Shown piece after piece: positions 1 through 61,324 of a stretch of 64,000 nt of DNA (position 1 is its first letter; each line of letters starts with the position of its first letter). The notes below the pieces were generated by a model. That model did no database searches and was not told the DNA's origin. It saw nothing but the letters and a program-made list of their open reading frames with translations. The translations under genes and the position numbers were made by a program. The stretch spans positions 13,640,001 to 13,704,000 of the forward strand of contig NC_087447.1 of the NCBI RefSeq assembly GCF_036321535.1, given 5' to 3'. Source of the DNA: Camelus dromedarius. Taxonomy: Eukaryota.

Positions 1-24
1 AATAACATCTTTTTCTTATTGCAG

Positions 25-123
25 TGTTTGTAAGGTATTGTCACCATATATTCAATTAATATGAATAAGGAGAAATTTAGCCTCCTTTTATTTGTTTTTA
101 CAACTATCTGCAAAATGCCAGAG
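25..123 (+). other. Candidate upstream exon of the OR4C45-like gene
   Basis: Acceptor tcttttcttattgcAG ending at 24 and donor GAG|GTGAGT at 123/124. The next acceptor tctttccAG at 235-236 gives a 113-nt intron. Confidence 0.5.
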
Positions 124-269
124 GTGAGTGAAAGGTGTAGCTTCACCAATCCCAGAGCCCAGGACTAAAGAGGTGATGAACTATTTTAGCATTGAATTTA
201 ACATTTCATCACTCAGAAATAATGTGATCTTTCCAGATGGACCATGTGCTCATAACCCAAGATGAGTTG

Positions 270-1199
270 ATGGAAAGGATGGGCAATGTAACAGAATTCA
301 TCCTGCTGGGCCTGACCCAGAATCCAGAACTGCAGACATTCTTATTTGCTGTGGTTTTAATTACCTACTTGACCACATTGGCAGGTAACCTGCTCATCTC
401 AGTCACCATCTTCATCAGTCCAGCCCTGGGTTCTCCCATGTACTTTTTTCTATCCTGCTTATCCATTATAGATGGCTTCTACTCTTCTTCCATAGCACCC
501 AAAATGATCTTTGACTTGATCTCTGGAAAGAACACCATATCCTTCGATGGTTGCATGACTCAGCTCTTTGCTGAACATTTCTTTGCTGCAGCTGAGATTA
601 TCTTGTTAATTGCCATGGCCTATGACCGCTATGTAGCTATCTGTAAGCCTTTGCACTATATGACCATCATGAGCAGACATGTGTGTGGATTCCTGGTTGG
701 AATGGCTGGAGTTTTAGGGTTTCTTCATGGAGGGATCCAGGTTTTATTCATGATCCAGTTACCATTCTGTGGCCCCAATGTCATTGACCACTTTATGTGT
801 GATTTAATACCTCTCCTGGAGCTAGCCTGCACGGACACTCACACTTTGGGGCCTCTGATTGCTGCCAACAGTGGGTCACTGTGTTTGCTAACTTTCTCAA
901 TGCTGGTTGCCTCCTATGTTTTCATCCTGCGCTCCCTGAGGACTCACAGCTCTGAAGGGCGTCACAAAGCTCTGTCAACCTGTGCCTCTCATGTCACTGT
1001 TGTCATCTTATTCTTTGTACCGTGTTCACTCCTGTACCTAAGACCCGTGACCTCCTTCCCCACTGACAAAGCTGTGACTGTGTTTTGCACCATAGTAACT
1101 CCTATGTTGAACCCTTTAATCTACACCCTGAGAAATGCAGAAGTGAAAAATGTCATGAAGAAACTCTGGGGGCAAATAATGAAAACTAGCGATAGATAA
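270..1199 (+). CDS. OR4C45: Olfactory receptor, OR4C45-like (intact, 309 aa from ATG 270; ORF is open from ATG 237)
   Basis: 7TM OR motifs [60 protein letters not shown] glycosylation site near the start. Recalled human OR4C45 shares [35 protein letters not shown] and DKAVTVFCT. Confidence 0.9.
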
Positions 1200-1337
1200 A
1201 TCTTGGGTGGAGTGTGTAGGCAAAAAAAAAAAAATCTAGTGATATTTCATAGAGCTTTATTCCTCTTCATAGCTAATTAAACTTGGAAAAATTATCCAGT
1301 CTGGATCAGTTTTCTTCAGGAGCCCATATATTGTGAG

Positions 1338-3087: not shown

Positions 3088-4026
3088 TTTTTATTGATGG
3101 ACAGTTGATTGATAATATTGTATTAGTTTCAGGTGTACAGCATAGTGATTCAGTTCTTTTTTCTGGTTGTATTCCATTATAGGTTATTATAAGATATTGA
3201 ATATAATTCCCTGTGCTATACAGTAAAGCCTTGTTGCTTCTGTATTTAATGTATAGTAGCTTTTATCTGTGAATCCTGTAACTCTAATTCATTCCTCCCT
3301 GACTCCTTCACCTCCCTGGTAACCATAAGTTTGTCTTCTATGCCTGTGAGTTTGTTTCTGTTTTGTATATAGATTCATTTGTATTAATTTTTAGATTCCA
3401 CATGTAAGTGATACCCTATGATACTTGTCTTTCTCTGTCTGACTTAACTCACTTAGTATAATATTNNNNNNNNNNNNNNNNNNNNNNNNNNNNNNNNNNN
3501 NNNNNNNNNNNNNNNNNNNNNNNNNNNNNNNNNNNNNNNNNNNNNNNNNNNNNNNNNNNNNNNNNNNNNNNNNNNNNNNNNNNNNNNNNNNNNNNNNNNN
3601 NNNNNNNNNNNNNNNNNNNNNNNNNNNNNNNNNNNNNNNNNNNNNNNNNTTTTGAATTAGAGTTTTCATTTTTTTTACAGATATATGCCCAGGAGTGGAG
3701 GTGCTGGATCACATAGTAGTTCTGTTTTCAGTTTTTAAGAAATCTCCATACTGTCCTCCATAGTGGCTGAACCAATCTACATTCCTACCAACAGTGTAGG
3801 AGGGTTCTCTTTTCTCCACATCTTCTCTAGCATTTATTATTTGTAGACTTTTTGATGATGGCCATTCTGATTGGTGTGAGGTAATACCTTGTTGTGGTTT
3901 TAACTTGCATTTCTCTGATGATTAGCGATGCTGATCACTTTTTCATATGCCTGCTGGCCATATGAATGTCTTCCTTGGAAAAATGTCTATTTAGAGCTTC
4001 CATGCATTTTTCCATTGGGTTGTTTG
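3088..4026 (-). mobile_element. LINE-1 3' fragment (ORF2 C-terminus and 3' UTR), interrupted by an N gap
   Basis: T-rich reversed tail, typical artiodactyl L1 3' UTR, and minus-strand peptide NIILSELSQTEKDKYHRVSLTCGI matching the L1 ORF2 end. Confidence 0.85.
3466..3649. other. Assembly gap (184 N) inside L1
   Basis: Run of N. Confidence 1.
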
Positions 4027-7824: not shown

Positions 7825-8733
7825 TTACTGTGTGAAGAACCTTCTCATGGCATTTTTTACCTCTTCATTTCTCAGGGTGTAAATGAGTGGATTCAACATG
7901 GGTGTTATGATACCATAAAATACTGCCATGTTTTTGTCTATAGATAAAGTAGATGATGGACGCACGTACGTAAACACACAGGGCACAAAGAACAAGGCAA
8001 CAACAGTGAAGTGGGCCCCGCAGGTGGAGAGGGCTTTGCGCCTCCCGTCCGCACTGTGAGACCTCAAGGAGCGAAGGATGACGATGTAGGAGGCAGCCAG
8101 CATGAGGAAGTTCAACAGGCAGATCGCACCACTGTTGGCCACCACCAGCAGACCAATGCCGTATGTGTTGGTGCAGGCAAGCTCCAGCAAGGGGTACAAA
8201 TCACAGACAAAGTGATTGATCACATTAGGGCCACAAAAGGGCAACTGAAGGACTAGCAAGAGCTGAACCAATGAATGCAGGAAGCCCCCAAGCCAAGCCA
8301 TCCCCACCAGCATGGCACAGAGACGCCTGGTCATGATGGTCATGTAGCGCAGGGGCTTGCAGATGGCCACGTAGCGGTCATAGGCCATCCCTGTGAGCAG
8401 GATGATCCCAACACCTCCAAAAAAATGGGCTCCAAAGAGCTGAGCCATGCAGCCCTCATAAGAGATGGCTCTCCCCTCATACAAGGAGTCAGCAATGAGT
8501 CTAGGGGCCATAGAGGAAGAATAACAGGTGTCAATAAAGGACAGATTGGCCAGGAAAAAATACATGGGGGAAGCCAGGGTAGGACTGGCGGTGATGGTGA
8601 CCACAATGAGAATGTTGCCACAAACTGTGACCACATAGATGATCAAAAAGATCACAAAGAGAACTCTCTGTACTTCCGGGTTCTGTGAGAGTCCCAGCAT
8701 GAAAAATTCTGTGATATTATGTAGTATTTCCAT
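7825..8733 (-). CDS. OR4C3: Olfactory receptor OR4C3 ortholog (302 aa, intact)
   Basis: True ATG at 8733 (the ORF-track start at 8748 is GTG). [26 protein letters not shown]...[37 protein letters not shown] closely matches recalled human OR4C3. Splice acceptor ttgactttatAG at 8771-8772. Confidence 0.92.
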
Positions 8734-10094
8734 AAAGTCCAAGGACACTGAGGATGCAGTACAGTATTGCCTATAAAGTCAAGGGAGAAACATAATTGTA
8801 GCAGAACTCATCATAGGGAGAAAGTATTACAAGATTTCCTTTAGCCACACTGACTTCCCTTTTCCCTCTTAACCCTTTCTGTTCCAAAATTCTTGTACCA
8901 ATCCATCCTGGTAACCAGAAAATGTGAGCATGTCTGTTCACTTTAATATCGCTGGGCACTAGATATCTAACTCATTATGTGGAAATAATTATTTAATTAT
9001 CTAAACTTTAACTTATTTTGTTTCTACTGAAATTGAGCTTTTGGCAGACACTGATTTTCTGTCAGCTGGAGTGCATACCTGACAATTTTCAGCAGGGCTC
9101 CATATATATGCAGTGGCACTTGAGGCCTCCATGAATATTTAGGATCTCCTGAAACCTCTACACGTATAGTCCTTACCTTTTGAGTTAAATCTTTCTTCCT
9201 GGGCTTTGCAATGAGGTTCGCTACACTTTCTGCTGTGTTTCCAATGAGTAACACAGGTGGGTGCAAAGCAAACTGAAGTAAGACTGGGAGAAACTGATGT
9301 GGTTGCAGCTGGAGACTTGCCCAAATTCTCTATTTCTCTCCATGTTCATTTACTCCCACTTCATGCCTGTGCTGTGGACAGTTATCATGTCTAAGAAGTT
9401 CAATTCCTCTTCCCCCTTGCTTTACACATCATACAGACTTCGGGGCTTTGCTTTCCCTGGATTTGGTGAAATCCTTCTAGTTAATGGCTACCAGACCTTC
9501 CACAGTCTACAGGGATGAGTCAAAGTAAAAATATTTTTTTTTAAGTTTTGTGATCATCAGTGAAAACTCTATGACATGGTTATCTACCTGTTCAGGACAC
9601 AAAGGAAGGTACAGGAGCAGGGAGAACAGATGCCCTGTCTCAGCCATCTATAAATCAGAATCTCATCTGGCAGAACATTCCTACTTACCCTTTCTTCTCC
9701 TAACTATATTAAGGAAATGCCTGTGCCTGTATTAGTTCTGGTTAAACAAAAAACTGTCACTCATCTATTATTACACCAACCATCTATTGTTTTCCTGGAA
9801 ACATAGGCCTTCTTAAAGTAGCTAAATCACCCAACTTGCTGAAAATCTGATGCCCAATATAAGAATTAAAGGAGAATCATTGAGTGTCAAAGGACGCAAA
9901 GGAAGAAACAGATACCCAGATATAAGAAATGCTGGAGAGAAGATTCCTGTACTGATCAGGAAACTGCACCCTTTTTCTCTTTCCAAGCTTTGTCGCAAGA
10001 AGGCAAATGCAGCTTCTGCGAGTGACGAGGCTGATGGGGACCTTTTCAGAGAAGAACATTGTGGCCAAGAGCACAGACGGCAGTCATAGGAGCC

Positions 10095-16244: not shown

Positions 16245-17153
16245 TCATTTGTTCCAGAGATTTTTCATGGCATTTTTCACCTCTGCATTCCTTAGTGTAT
16301 AAATCAGGGGGTTGAACATGGGTGTCAAGATACAATAAAACACAGCCACTATTTTGTCTATGGGCAAAGTAGATGATGGACGCATGTAAATAAATATACA
16401 GGGTACAAAGAATAAGGCAATGACAGTGAAGTGGGCCCCGCAGGTGGAGAGGGCTTTGCGCCTCCCCTCTGCACTGTGGGACCTCAAGGAGCGAAGGATG
16501 ACGATGTAGGAGGCAGCCAGCATGAGGAAGTTCAACAGGCAGATCACACCACTGTTGGCCACCACCAGCAGACCAATGACATATGTGTTGGTGCAGGCAA
16601 GCTCCAGCAAGGGGTACAAGTCACAAACAAAGTGATTGATCATGTTAGGTCCACAGAAGGGCAACTGAAGGACCAGCAGAAGCTGAACCAATGAATGCAG
16701 GAAGCCTCCCAGCCAAGCCATCCCCACCAGCATGGCACAGAGATGCCTGGTCATGATGGTCGTGTAGTGCAGGGGCTTGCAGATGGCCACGTAGCGGTCA
16801 TAGGCCATCCCTGTGAGCAGAATGATCTCAGTTCCTCCCAACAAATGGGCAACAAAGAATTGAGCCAGGCAGCCCTCATAAGAGATGGCTCTCCCCTCAT
16901 ACATGGAGTCAGCAATCAGTTTGGGGGTCATACATGAGGAATAGCAAGTATCAATAAAGGACAAATATGAGAGGAAAAAGTACATGGGAGAGCCCAAGGT
17001 GGGGCTGCAGATAATGGTGATCACGATAAGCAGGTTGCCCCCAACAGAGATCAGGTAGACAATTAAAAAGAGCACGAATAAAACTCTCTGCACCTTGGGG
17101 TTTTGTGAGAGTCCCAGCATGAAAAACTCCGTGATGTTTCTTGGACTATCCAT
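16245..17153 (-). CDS. Olfactory receptor, OR4C3-like paralog (302 aa, intact)
   Basis: Complete ORF with all OR motifs. The central third is nearly identical to the 7825-8733 gene while the termini are diverged. Confidence 0.92.
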
Positions 17154-37282: not shown

Positions 37283-38212
37283 TTATTTCTCATCTAGTTT
37301 CATTGCCCTGATCCACAGCCTCTTCATGGCCTTCTTCACTTCAGCATTTCTGAAGGAGTAGATGACAGGGTTGAGGAGGGGGGTGATCACTGTGTAAAAC
37401 ACAGCCACCATCCTGTCCGCAGGCAGAGTGGTAGAGGTCCTCAGGTAGATGAAGATGCAGGGCCCAAAGAACAAGGTGACCACAGCGATATGGGACCCAC
37501 AGGTGGAGAGGGCCTTGCGCCGCCCCTCAGAGCTTTGGTTCTTCACATGGAGCAAAATGACCACGTAGGAGGCTACCAGGACCACGAAGCTGATCACAGA
37601 CAGGGTCCCCCCATTAGCAACAATCAGGAGACCAATGAGGAAGGTGTCAGAACAGGCAAGTTTGAGCAGAGGAAGCACATCACAGAAGTAGTGGTCAATC
37701 ACATTGGGGCCACAGAAAGGCAAGCGGAAGATGAGAAGGACTTGGGCAAAGGAATGCACAAAGCCACCTACCCAGGCTATTCCCACNNNNNNNNNNNNNN
37801 NNNNNNNNNNNNNNNNNNNNNNNNNNNNNNNNNNNNNNNNNNNNNNNNNNNNNNNNNNNNNNNNNNNNNNNNNNNNNNNNNNNNNNNNNNNNNNNNNNNN
37901 NNNNNNNNNNNNNNNNNNCTGTGACACGCAGCCCCAGAAAAATATGGCTTTCCTTTCAGCCAGAAAATCTGAGATGAGTTTGGGGGCTGTGGTAGAGGAG
38001 TAGCAGATCTCCACAAAGGACAGGTGGCTGAGGAAGAAGTATATGGGGGAGCTGAGGCTTCTGCTGGTCATGACAGTGAGCACAATGAGCAAATTGCCCA
38101 GCACAGTTGCTGTGTACAAGAGCAGAAATATCACAAAGCAAACTTTCTGCACATTCCGACTAGGAGAAAGTCCCAGAAAAATAAATTCTGTCACATTGCG
38201 TGTGTCAGCCAT
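37283..38212 (-). CDS. OR4X2: Olfactory receptor OR4X2-like (309 aa; 132-nt N gap over TM3-IC2)
   Basis: VLTVMTSRSL, TAPKLISD, GLLIVANGGTLSVISF and KAMKRLWIRAMKLDEK match recalled human OR4X2. Frame is preserved across the gap. Acceptor tcttttctatcatttcAG at 38252-38253. Intactness inside the gap is unknown. Confidence 0.85.
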   Translation of the reverse strand: MADTRNVTEFIFLGLSPSRNVQKVCFVIFLLLYTATVLGNLLIVLTVMTSRSLSSPIYFFLSHLSFVEICYSSTTAPKLISDFLAERKAIFFWGCVSQXXXXXXXXXXXXXXXXXXXXXXXXXXXXXXXXXXXXXXXXXXXXVGIAWVGGFVHSFAQVLLIFRLPFCGPNVIDHYFCDVLPLLKLACSDTFLIGLLIVANGGTLSVISFVVLVASYVVILLHVKNQSSEGRRKALSTCGSHIAVVTLFFGPCIFIYLRTSTTLPADRMVAVFYTVITPLLNPVIYSFRNAEVKKAMKRLWIRAMKLDEK

Positions 38213-44791: not shown

Positions 44792-45061
44792 NNNNNNNNN
44801 NNNNNNNNNNNNNNNNNNNNNNNNNNNNNNNNNNNNNNNNNNNNNNNNNNNNNNNNNNNNNNNNNNNNNNNNNNNNNNNNNNNNNNNNNNNNNNNNNNNN
44901 NNNNNNNNNNNNNNNNNNNNNNNNNNNNNNNNNNNNNNNNNNNNNNNNNNNNNNNNNNNNNNNNNNNNNNNNNNNNNNNNNNNNNNNNNNNNNNNNNNNN
45001 NNNNNNNNNNNNNNNNNNNNNNNNNNNNNNNNNNNNNNNNNNNNNNNNNNNNNNNNNNNNN
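44792..45061. other. Assembly gap (270 N)
   Basis: Run of N. Confidence 1.
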
Positions 45062-46720: not shown

Positions 46721-47650
46721 TCACTTCTTCCCTGAGGTCCCCTTGACCCCAAACAGTTTCCTCATGGCATTTGTCACCTCATTGTTCCTCAGCGTGTAGA
46801 TGAGAGGGTTCAGCAAAGGTGGCATGATGATGTTAAAGAGGATGACAAGTTTGTCTGCAGCCAGGGTGGTGGAGGGACGAATGTACATGAACATGGGGGG
46901 CACAAGAACCAAAAGGACCGTGATGATATGTGAGCCACATGTGGACAGAGCCTTGCGCCGGCTCTCAGATGACCGGCTTCTCAGGTTCAGTAAGATGACC
47001 ACGTAGGAGATAATAAGGACGATGAAGGACACCAAAGAAATCATGCCACTGTTGGCCACCACAATGAGCCCCACCACATAGGTGTCTGCACAGGCCAGCT
47101 TCAGCAGGGGATGGACATCACAGAAGAAGTTGTCAATCTCACTGGGCCCACAAAAGGGCAGCTGGACTGTGAGGAGGGTCTGCAGGATGGAATGCAGGAA
47201 GCCAGCCACCCAGGAGGCCCCCGCCAACAGGCCACGCTTCCCCCGATCNNNNNNNNNNNNNNNNNNNNNNNNNNNNNNNNNNNNNNNNNNNNNNNNNNNN
47301 NNNNNNNNNNNNNNNNNNNNNNNNNNNNNNNNNNNNNNNNNNNNNNNNNNNNNNNNNNNNNNNNNNNNNNNNNNNNNNNNNNNNNNNNNNNNNNNNACGA
47401 AAGTGTCCGCAATCATCTTGGGTGTGGTGGCGGATGGATAGCACATGTCGGCAAAAGACAAGTGGCTGAGGAAGAAATACATGGGAGCATTCAGGGTCTT
47501 GCTGGCATTGATGGTGATGATGACCAGAAGGTTCCCCAGGATGGTGAGCACGTGGAACAGGGAGAAGACCAGGAAGCACACGTGCTGCATCTCTCGGCTC
47601 TGGAAGAGGCCGAACAGCACAAACTCTGTCACATTGTTCTTAGTGCCCAT
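46721..47650 (-). CDS. OR4S1: Olfactory receptor OR4S1 (309 aa; 148-nt N gap over TM3-IC2)
   Basis: True ATG at 47650 (the ORF-track start is TTG). [23 protein letters not shown]...[18 protein letters not shown]...[15 protein letters not shown] matches recalled human OR4S1. Acceptor gtgtccttgcAG at 47689-47690. Confidence 0.9.
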
Positions 47651-47788
47651 GGATTCTCTGCACCGAGCACTGGACAAGGTGGTTAGCTCTGCAAGGACAC
47701 AGATTACACGAGATGAGAAAGCTTCCCAAACCCAGGAGTCAGAAAATTGTATTCAAATCTAATAATGACCCTGGTACCCTATTTAAAC

Positions 47789-60394: not shown

Positions 60395-61324
60395 CTATTT
60401 CTTGTCCCAAATCACTTTCCTCCCCATCAGTCTCCTCATGGCGCTTTTGACTTCAGCATTCCTGAAGGAGTAAATGACGGGGTTTAAGAGAGGTGTGACC
60501 ACCGTGTAGAACACGGCGACTACCTTGTCTGCAGGGAGGGTGACACAGGGCCTCATGTAGACAAAGGAACAGGGGATGAAGAACAGGGCCGCCACTGCAA
60601 CGTGAGCGGCGCAGGTGGAGAGGGCCTTGCGCCGGCCTTCTGAGGTCTGGGTCCTCAGGGACTGCAGGATGACCACGTAGGAAGCGAGCAGCCCAGTGAA
60701 GCTGGCCACGGAGATGGACCCGCCATTGGTGATGACGAGTATGCCGATGAGGAAAGTGTCCGAGCAGGCCAGCTTCAGCACCGGGTGAACGTCACAGAAG
60801 TAGTGGTCGAGGACCTGGGGGCCGCAGAAGGGCAGCTGGAAGATGAGGAAGGTTTGCCCGGCAGAATGCAGCAAGCCCCCACCCCACGCCACCCCCACCA
60901 GGAGGCCACACGCGCGCCGGCTCATGATGACAGTGTAGTGCAGGGGCTTGCAGATGGCCACGTAGCGGTCGTAGGCCATCACCGTCAGGAGAAAGATCTC
61001 GGCGCCACCAAAGAAATGGAGGAAAAATATCTGTGTGATGCAGCCCTTGAGGGAAATGACTTTCCTCCCCAAAAAAGAATCAAGGATGAGTCTGGGGACC
61101 GTGACAGAACAGTAACAGATCTCCGCAAAGGATAAATAGCCAAGGAAGAAATACATGGGGGAGGTGAGCCCCCTGCTGGCCATGATGGTCACCACAATGA
61201 GGCCATTACCGAGCACAATGGCCGTGTACGTGAGGAGAAACACCACAGAAATTAACTTCTGCACATCCCGGTTCTGGGAAAATCCCAAGAATATGATTTC
61301 AGTCACATTGCTTGTAGCAGCCAT
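60395..61324 (-). CDS. OR4X1: Olfactory receptor OR4X1 (309 aa, intact)
   Basis: MAATSNVTEIIFLGFSQN, GNGLIVVTI, EICYCSV, GQTFLIFQLPFCGP, TNGGSISV and RPCVTLPADK match recalled human OR4X1. Acceptor atttctgtgattgcAG at 61349-61350. Confidence 0.93.
   Translation of the reverse strand: MAATSNVTEIIFLGFSQNRDVQKLISVVFLLTYTAIVLGNGLIVVTIMASRGLTSPMYFFLGYLSFAEICYCSVTVPRLILDSFLGRKVISLKGCITQIFFLHFFGGAEIFLLTVMAYDRYVAICKPLHYTVIMSRRACGLLVGVAWGGGLLHSAGQTFLIFQLPFCGPQVLDHYFCDVHPVLKLACSDTFLIGILVITNGGSISVASFTGLLASYVVILQSLRTQTSEGRRKALSTCAAHVAVAALFFIPCSFVYMRPCVTLPADKVVAVFYTVVTPLLNPVIYSFRNAEVKSAMRRLMGRKVIWDKK

Follow-up and report, generated by a model that had tools for sequence, protein, structure and literature searches.

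A Possible Young Alternative 5′ Exon With an In-Frame Upstream ATG in Front of an OR4C45-Like Olfactory Receptor Gene of the Dromedary

The Receptor Gene and Its Candidate Upstream Exon

We analyzed a stretch of 64,000 nucleotides (nt) from Camelus dromedarius (NCBI RefSeq assembly GCF_036321535.1, contig NC_087447.1, positions 13,640,001 to 13,704,000 of the forward strand), hereafter called the window, which begins with an OR4C45-like olfactory receptor (OR) gene and, directly in front of it, a short block of sequence that has the appearance of an additional exon. All positions given below are those of the window. The open reading frame (ORF) of the receptor at 237–1199 on the plus strand is intact and encodes 320 amino acids (aa) from ATG 237. 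It matches Pfam 7tm_4 over residues 42–310, which represent the seven-helix core (E = 1.7e-40, 140 bits), and the relatives closest to it, from many mammals and with 84–95% identity, carry the name OR4C45 or OR4C45-like, which bears out the OR4C45-like identity given in the original prediction for this DNA. The translation contains all of the usual OR motifs, its length lies within the range of 300–350 aa, and the N-terminal NxT sequon (NVT) is encoded by codons 16–18 of the 320-aa form. The features of the gene and of the block in front of it are as follows.

1–24, plus strand: candidate 3′ splice site with a branch-like ATAAC (2–6), a pyrimidine tract (9–20), and CAG (22–24)
25–123, plus strand: candidate 99-nt alternative 5′ exon, the top-ranked AG..GT pair in the window
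31–33, plus strand: in-frame TAA in the sequence, closing the frame upstream of ATG 61
61–123, plus strand: 21-codon leader ORF, MNKEKFSLLLFVFTTICKMPE, with a second in-frame ATG at 115
124–236, plus strand: candidate 113-nt intron with GTGAGT (124–129), a branch-like TTCAT (205–209), and a short pyrimidine tract plus CAG (226–236)
237–1199, plus strand: coding exon of the OR4C45-like receptor (ORF, Pfam 7tm_4), with in-frame ATGs at 270 and 279

The original prediction had placed an acceptor AG at 23–24, a TAA at 31–33, a start codon at 61, a donor at 123/124, and a second acceptor AG at 235–236 in front of ATG 237. All of these positions are correct, and the 21 open codons and the phase-0 join were likewise read correctly. 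The AG at 23–24 (CAG 22–24) is preceded by the pyrimidine tract tctttttcttattgcag (also given as tctttttcttattg), and ATG 61 has an A at −3 and an A at +4. From there the leader ORF runs open to GAG/GTGAGT (121–123/124–129), the AG at 235–236 abuts ATG 237, and a join of 123 to 237 is in phase 0. The predicted spliced product would thus consist of MNKEKFSLLLFVFTTICKMPE followed by the 320-aa receptor and would have 341 aa.

For the two strands of the window (128 kb), splice sites were scored with approximate matrices for donors and acceptors, and AG..GT pairs with a distance of 50–250 nt and scores of at least 2 for both sites were ranked. The donor at 124 yielded a score of 7.53 bits, and a score as high was found at only 2 of the 6548 GT sites. 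For the acceptor at 24 the score was 8.82, which is equaled or surpassed at 10 of 8904 AG sites. Among 314 AG..GT pairs, 25–123 took the first rank, both by the summed score and by the weaker site. The splice signals of 25–123 are more than chance, because by these matrices no other potential internal exon on either strand of the 64 kb is as well defined. The acceptor at 236 has a modest score (2.02, 93rd percentile) and resembles the acceptors that are located 5–39 nt before the starts of the other ORs of the window. The open in-phase ORF upstream is unremarkable by itself, since in-frame upstream ATGs are present in 13.6% of the human and 21.5% of the mouse OR genes (Barnes et al., 2020, PMC7055050). 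A repeat origin of the block was considered and rejected: blastn found no second copy of positions 1–269 within the window, and no repeat element was identified there. In a promoter motif scan of positions 1–236 and of 500 nt of upstream sequence from Vicugna, only isolated homeodomain-like hexamers occurred, and no O/E-like site with at most one mismatch was found in these two regions.

Conservation of the Block in Related Loci

The block was compared with nine related loci, namely those of Vicugna (L001), badger (Meles, L002), hippo (L003), Moschus (L004), horse (Equus, L005), Diceros (L006), Lynx (L007), the bat Hipposideros (L008), and Ceratotherium (L009), which were taken via the protein ids of the relatives themselves and aligned to positions 1–373 of the window. 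The whole 5′ flank including the candidate intron aligns across the species that retain the block, and the block therefore dates back at least to the common ancestor of the compared Laurasiatherian species. The AG at 23–24 is present in the window genome only; Vicugna has GCGG at this site and the seven other species have TGG. The pyrimidine tract and GAG/GT(G/A)AGT are older than this AG and are shared beyond Camelus. From this distribution, it was probably a CpG transition (CGG to CAG) that made the acceptor, and its birth appears to fall within one genus, Camelus. No other decent AG upstream of the donor was found in the eight block-retaining species (scores of at most 0.3), with two exceptions, one AG inside a badger-specific insertion of 46 nt and one that is 250 nt away in the horse.

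ATG 61 is retained in Vicugna, Moschus, Diceros, Ceratotherium, and Lynx; Equus has AGG, Meles ACG, and Hipposideros ATA in its place. The leader frame is intact only in the camelids, Moschus, and the two rhinos; it is broken by a 1-nt deletion giving TAA in Lynx, by a 1-nt and a 3-nt deletion in Equus, and by the 46-nt insertion in Meles. Five of eight species (Vicugna, Moschus, both rhinos, and Lynx) retain the donor GT(G/A)AGT after GAG. In Equus and Meles the donor is weaker, Hipposideros has lost it, and in the hippo it is deleted. Lynx has lost the acceptor at 236. In the hippo, the gene is intact (309 aa) but has no homolog of positions 1–173, hence neither the exon-like block nor the donor. 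In the hippo locus (L003:2500–2967), the homology to the 5′ flank of the window ends at window position 174, with unrelated sequence upstream of it. As regards the alignment of orthologous loci to which the original prediction had pointed, ATG 61, donor, and phase are thus retained in Vicugna, but horse, lynx, badger, and bat have lost the ATG or the frame, and the hippo does not have the block.

The identity to the window is slightly higher over 61–123 than over 124–236 only in Vicugna (96.8% vs. 94.7%) and horse (77.8% vs. 75.2%). Elsewhere it is not higher, as in Diceros (81.0% vs. 85.8%) and Meles (65.1% vs. 76.1%). Over 270–373, the identity amounts to 85–91% in the non-camelid species and is clearly above that of the leader in most of them. 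The mean majority fraction in seven independent lineages is 0.853 for the leader ORF, 0.853 for positions 130–200 of the candidate intron, and 0.845 for the donor. Upstream of the coding sequence, conservation peaks only at 211–240 around the acceptor at 236 (0.93–0.95, seven lineages). Judged from this comparison, the genuine acceptor of the 5′ intron is the conserved one at 236. The identity of the flank farther upstream is similar (80% between Ceratotherium and Vicugna, 71% between Meles and Vicugna), and therefore positions 1–210 drift at about the local background rate.

The Conserved Start Codon of the Receptor

The N-termini of 120 relatives fall into classes that start at the equivalents of three ATGs, namely 279, 270, and 237. 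The class of ATG 279 (M-x-NVTEF, 306 aa) is the commonest among these relatives. ATG 270 (309 aa) is the annotated start of the window product P0002 and of the Vicugna product P0003, and the class of ATG 237 (320 aa) is found in lynx, hyena, rhino, horse, bat, aardvark, tenrec, and elephant. The best Kozak context belongs to ATG 279, which has an A at −3 and a G at +4, whereas ATG 270 has a T at −3. ATG 237 has a C at −3, which would become a G if 123 were spliced to 237. Based on the sequences compared, the conserved start of the receptor is ATG 279. In the badger (Meles meles, L002:23519–23600), the equivalents of ATG 270 and ATG 279 are ATC and AAG, so that both canonical starts are lost. 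Since both of these downstream ATGs are lost, translation in the badger must start at the equivalent of ATG 237 or upstream of it. The badger copy suggests that the 11-residue MDxxLxTQ extension may truly be coding in some species.

Selection on the Leader Codons and Resemblance to a Signal Peptide

Among the intact leader copies, the variable columns at codon positions 1, 2, and 3 number 8, 5, and 10, respectively. Nei–Gojobori pN/pS of the leader is 0.25–0.71 for pairs between lineages, and Camelus and Vicugna differ by two nonsynonymous changes (C17G, P20S) and no synonymous one. In neutral simulations, the observed number of changes was placed randomly with the transition share of the flank and stops were rejected, which gave median pN/pS values of 0.66–0.77. 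Compared to these simulations, the observed values yielded p = 0.23, 0.21, 0.42, and 0.027 (uncorrected) and were within the neutral range for three of the four pairs. Purifying selection on the leader is thus not demonstrable from the available copies, and pN/pS values below 1 are not taken here as a sign of coding function.

The original prediction had compared the added piece to a cleavable signal peptide. The leader has an n-region (MNKEK) with a net charge of +1, an h-region (FSLLLFVF) with a mean Kyte–Doolittle hydropathy of 2.9, and then small residues. We applied a crude n/h/c rule, which demands a net positive charge before the core, an uncharged window of eight residues with a mean Kyte–Doolittle value of at least 2.0, and small residues at −3/−1 shortly after. 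This rule places a candidate cleavage site after T14; from our own, not computed reading of the sequence, another candidate site may lie after C17. The resemblance holds in part, as the rule is passed in Camelus, Vicugna, and Diceros but failed in Moschus (FKLHPFFF) and Ceratotherium (FNLAPFFF). Its base rate is 3.9%, as determined on 710 ORFs of the window that begin with ATG, comprise at least 21 codons, and lie outside the OR exons. The T-rich tract CTCCTTTTATTTGTTTTT encodes the hydrophobic core, in which relatives have a central proline, and therefore the signal-peptide property is camelid-derived rather than conserved. In most G protein-coupled receptors (GPCRs), the first transmembrane segment serves as signal anchor, whereas 5–10% possess a cleavable signal peptide, and addition of a cleavable leader, the 17-aa LRRC32 peptide “Lucy,” raises the surface expression of ORs in HEK293T cells (Shepard et al., 2013, PMC3698168). 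The background of the original prediction, that a minority of ORs are split over two exons and that leaders aid trafficking, agrees with the literature (PMC7055050, PMC3698168).

Gene Models and Sequencing Runs

No leader-bearing product is present among the annotated products of Camelus, Vicugna, Diceros, and Moschus, and the longest annotated products have 309 aa in Vicugna, 309 aa in Moschus, and 320 aa in Diceros. Furthermore, no 341-aa product with near-100% identity was found among the best matches in a collection of 5.8 billion proteins. The annotation thus speaks weakly against use of the leader exon.

The gene model of Meles has exons 13 kb and 2.4 kb upstream, which are spliced exactly into the AG/ATG acceptor and skip the homolog of 25–123. 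In the X1 model of Ceratotherium, the first exon provides an 11-nt coding start 2.5 kb upstream and is joined to an internal acceptor, whereby the homolog of 25–123 is skipped as well. In rhinoceros, horseshoe bats, buffalo, and marmot, isoforms have been predicted that place three to five residues from far-upstream exons before NVTEF, with the N-termini MATV-, MPVDN-, MSDAH-, MILSH-, MSDTN-, and MEAES- (P0031–P0034, P0060–P0062, P0067, P0071, and P0111). The internal acceptor was mapped in Ceratotherium only (L009 near 4800, ATGAG/C AAT), and the N-termini of the other isoforms fit the same junction. Camelids do not have this internal acceptor, as they carry GGC (Gly; ATGGGC) at window positions 279–284 where others have AGC (Ser; ATGAGC). 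The upstream context of the internal acceptor is purine-rich, and these isoform models therefore deserve checking. The coding start ATGGCTACTGT/GT that the first exon contributes to the rhino X1 model (L009:1990–2015) has a counterpart at a conserved position, which for the camelid gene lies about 2.9 kb upstream (L001:3000–3180). This site lies outside the window, and the ATG of the far exon in rhino and bat is a GTG in Vicugna and the hippo, where the sequence may still represent a non-coding 5′ exon.

In the index of sequencing runs, parts of the locus (window 1–1300) occurred only in RNA runs labeled “reproductive system metagenome” and in runs of uncertain kind (X1–X8, X25, and X26), and no olfactory RNA run containing the locus was found in this index. 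The literature search yielded no publication on RNA sequencing of camelid olfactory epithelium.

Interpretation of the Block and Alternative Explanations

The receptor itself is most likely an ordinary OR whose protein is encoded by a single long coding exon, with a 5′ intron that ends at 236. Positions 25–123 we read as a young, unselected alternative 5′ exon of the camel lineage that carries an in-frame upstream ATG, and we would assign a probability of roughly 0.4 to this reading. Accordingly worded as a sequence of events, the block would be an old, neutrally drifting 5′ flank with the donor GAG/GTGAGT, a pyrimidine tract, and an open in-phase ATG, of which the donor and the tract would already have been present in the common ancestor of the compared Laurasiatherian species. 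A single CpG transition (GCGG to GCAG) in the line leading to Camelus would then have supplied an acceptor close to consensus at a distance of 99 nt upstream of the donor, and a well-defined cassette exon within the 5′ intron would have been the result. The pre-mRNA probably starts at promoters farther upstream, outside the window, as the gene models of other species suggest, and if so, the spliceosome would probably include the exon in at least some of the transcripts. ATG 61 would then act as an in-frame upstream start that adds 21 hydrophobic residues, so that the product would extend 35 residues beyond the canonical start. Leaky scanning would in this case mix N-termini and not repress translation, because the ATGs at 115, 237, 270, and 279 are all in frame. 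Use of the exon and a translation start at ATG 61 are what we infer from the splice signals and the frame. The balance tips slightly towards presence of the 123/237 junction in some camel OR transcripts. Given this junction, substantial use of ATG 61 would fall somewhat short of even odds, and that the leader peptide works as a cleaved leader with a benefit appears very unlikely. Unusual about the candidate are the 113-nt intron, the apparent birth of its acceptor in a single genus, and the signal-peptide-like product.

Several points weigh against reading the block as a young and unselected exon. The splice scores rest on donor and acceptor matrices that are approximate, and the percentiles are indicative only. 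The pN/pS of 0.25 for the pair of window and Ceratotherium (p = 0.027) hints at some constraint. The compared loci may include paralogs instead of strict orthologs, and Camelus was represented by one genome, by which the birth of the acceptor at 23–24 is sampled. In the run index, the pieces of the locus were patchy, differed between runs of one study, and included intron words. Run X8 contained 0.60 of the sampled words of positions 1–236, compared to a maximum of 0.45 that can be reached without touching 124–236, and therefore it carried genomic or unspliced sequence. This pattern fits carried-over host DNA or unspliced or nascent RNA and is silent on splicing in olfactory neurons.

It could also be that 25–123 is a pseudo-exon that is never or almost never included in the mRNA, whereby non-coding exons from far upstream join the acceptor at 236 directly. 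This would be in line with the models of Meles and Ceratotherium, which skip the homologous block, with the longest annotated products of Camelus, Vicugna, Diceros, and Moschus, which have 309–320 aa and not 341, with the lack of a 341-aa product among the best matches of the protein collection, and with the absence of excess conservation of exon and donor. However, the block constitutes the best acceptor–donor pair in 128 kb, is located directly before an OR coding exon on the correct strand, and has sites of a strength that is usually recognized; moreover, annotation in these species is for the most part guided by proteins and seldom draws on olfactory RNA. We regard the pseudo-exon as unlikely, though by no means negligible. 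A further explanation would be an old non-coding first exon, in which the donor at 124 is used across Laurasiatherian species, transcription starts close to the beginning of the window or shortly upstream of it, and ATG 61, where it survives, is an in-frame upstream ATG by coincidence. A donor of such strength is rare by chance, it is retained in five of eight lineages, and outside Camelus there is no upstream acceptor, so that use of the donor would require a first exon there. Yet the conservation of the donor is no better than background, the O/E-like site is missing from 1–236 and from the 500-nt upstream region of Vicugna, the hippo copy is intact without the block, and a 5′ intron of 113 nt would be very short compared to 550–22628 bp (PMC7055050). 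Such a first exon seems improbable.

The most far-reaching possibility is a functional natural leader in camelids, with the exon spliced in, a start at ATG 61, and a 21-residue cleavable signal peptide that aids insertion into the endoplasmic reticulum or delivery to the surface. The n-region charge of +1, the h-region hydropathy of 2.9, and the small residues after it would suit such a function, as would the passing of the crude rule by Camelus, Vicugna, and Diceros at a base rate of 3.9% and the retention of ATG 61, donor, and phase in Vicugna. Furthermore, the surface expression of ORs in HEK293T cells benefits from an added cleavable leader, and such a leader exists in 5–10% of the GPCRs (PMC3698168). 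On the other hand, Vicugna does not have the acceptor, both differences between Camelus and Vicugna are nonsynonymous (C17G, P20S), Moschus and Ceratotherium fail the rule, and the ancestral core holds a proline. In addition, the leader is broken in four lineages and deleted in the hippo, and its hydrophobic core is simply what a T-rich tract encodes in this frame. We consider a functional leader very improbable, and that the camel CpG transition made a coding exon which gives one OR a natural cleavable signal peptide is more doubtful still. The original prediction had proposed just such a natural leader-bearing, split-exon OR. Its signals are strong and both ATG and phase occur in Vicugna, so that it is not refuted on the grounds it had itself named, such as loss of ATG or phase in other camelids. 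Against it stand the acceptor at 23–24, which is confined to the camel, the lack of excess conservation, the lack of an annotated leader product, and the poor agreement with accepted split-exon ORs described below. If used, the candidate would add a further case to the ORs that carry an in-frame upstream ATG on an alternative 5′ exon, and this exon would not be a conserved coding one.

Genomic Surroundings

The window represents an OR4 cluster, in which five other OR4-family ORFs are present besides the receptor, all of them on the minus strand.

7825–8748, 16245–17153, 37283–38212, 46721–47677, and 60395–61324, minus strand: five further OR4-family ORFs

In each of these five ORs, a candidate AG acceptor is located 5–39 nt before the start codon, which is the standard OR layout. 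No block similar to positions 1–236 was found upstream of any of them. The window contains four runs of N (3466–3649, 37787–37918, 44792–45061, and 47249–47396), two of which interrupt the OR reading frames of the genes at 37283–38212 and 46721–47677. A run of 13 A is located at 1222–1234 and starts 23 nt past the stop codon of the receptor. In Vicugna, another OR gene encoding 307 aa (L001:97–1020) lies on the same strand about 5 kb upstream of the receptor, and it is conceivable that read-through transcripts or 5′ exons are shared with this gene, as has been described for certain ORs of human and mouse. In human, OR4C45 is a polymorphic pseudogene with a single exon, for which the olfactory mucosa yielded zero counts (PMC7055050).

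Relation to Known Systems and Significance

It is common for OR genes to have 5′ exons that are alternatively spliced (PMC7055050). With those ORs that have an upstream ATG in 5′ exons, the camel gene shares the long coding exon after short 5′ exons, the acceptor just before the start, and the in-frame upstream ATG. In contrast, the camel exon is predicted only, its intron has 113 nt, and its acceptor is apparently restricted to one genus. Split-exon ORs number 13 in human and 41 in mouse, e.g., OR2I1 and OR5BS1; for their acceptance, conservation of the initiator Met and of the junction in other mammals as well as transcript evidence for the junction were demanded, and the accepted introns have 550–22628 bp, a length not different from that of the 5′ introns of single-exon ORs (PMC7055050). 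OR4C genes are absent from the supplementary file cited for split ORs (PMC7055050). The camel candidate resembles these genes in that the start codon is located on a separate upstream exon, which is joined in frame to the N-terminal region. However, neither the initiator Met (ATG 61) nor the junction and phase are conserved in other mammals in the manner required there, and the upstream exon is not needed for an intact ORF.

The OR4C45-like isoforms with far exons in rhinoceros, horseshoe bats, buffalo, and marmot belong to the same family, and there, too, upstream exons supply the start. Those isoforms, however, add only 3–5 residues, skip the homolog of 25–123, and use the internal acceptor that camelids lack. 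De novo exonization by a new 3′ splice site has been described for Alu and other intronic sequences. The camel block is similar in that one substitution provides the AG, with the pyrimidine tract before it and the donor after it already in place and a lineage-specific cassette exon as the predicted outcome, and an AG derived in one lineage together with an older tract and donor is indeed what the comparison of loci revealed. It differs from exonization at Alu in that the block contains no identified repeat element and the exon is only predicted. The Lucy tag, i.e., the LRRC32 signal peptide, is likewise a basic-then-hydrophobic peptide placed before an OR, but it is engineered, has 17 aa, is leucine-rich, and its cleavage was shown, whereas the camel core is shorter, encoded by a T-rich tract, and predicted only (PMC3698168).

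If the exon is not used, the locus would be a warning that the best exon-like pair in 64 kb, although in frame with a real gene, can be unselected. OR starts would then have to be chosen by conservation and not by the longest ORF, as the curation of OR genes in human and mouse already argues (PMC7055050). Use of the exon, in turn, would provide a clean case, open to dating, in which one point mutation adds an N-terminal extension to a receptor, and it could show how a signal peptide arises from non-coding sequence. Should the leader hold true, it would be, to our knowledge, the first native OR with a cleavable leader of this kind and a natural counterpart of the engineered Lucy tag, for which alpaca and llama, with a G at window position 23, would provide a built-in control. 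Use of the exon would also bear on the question of why ORs traffic poorly without engineered leaders.

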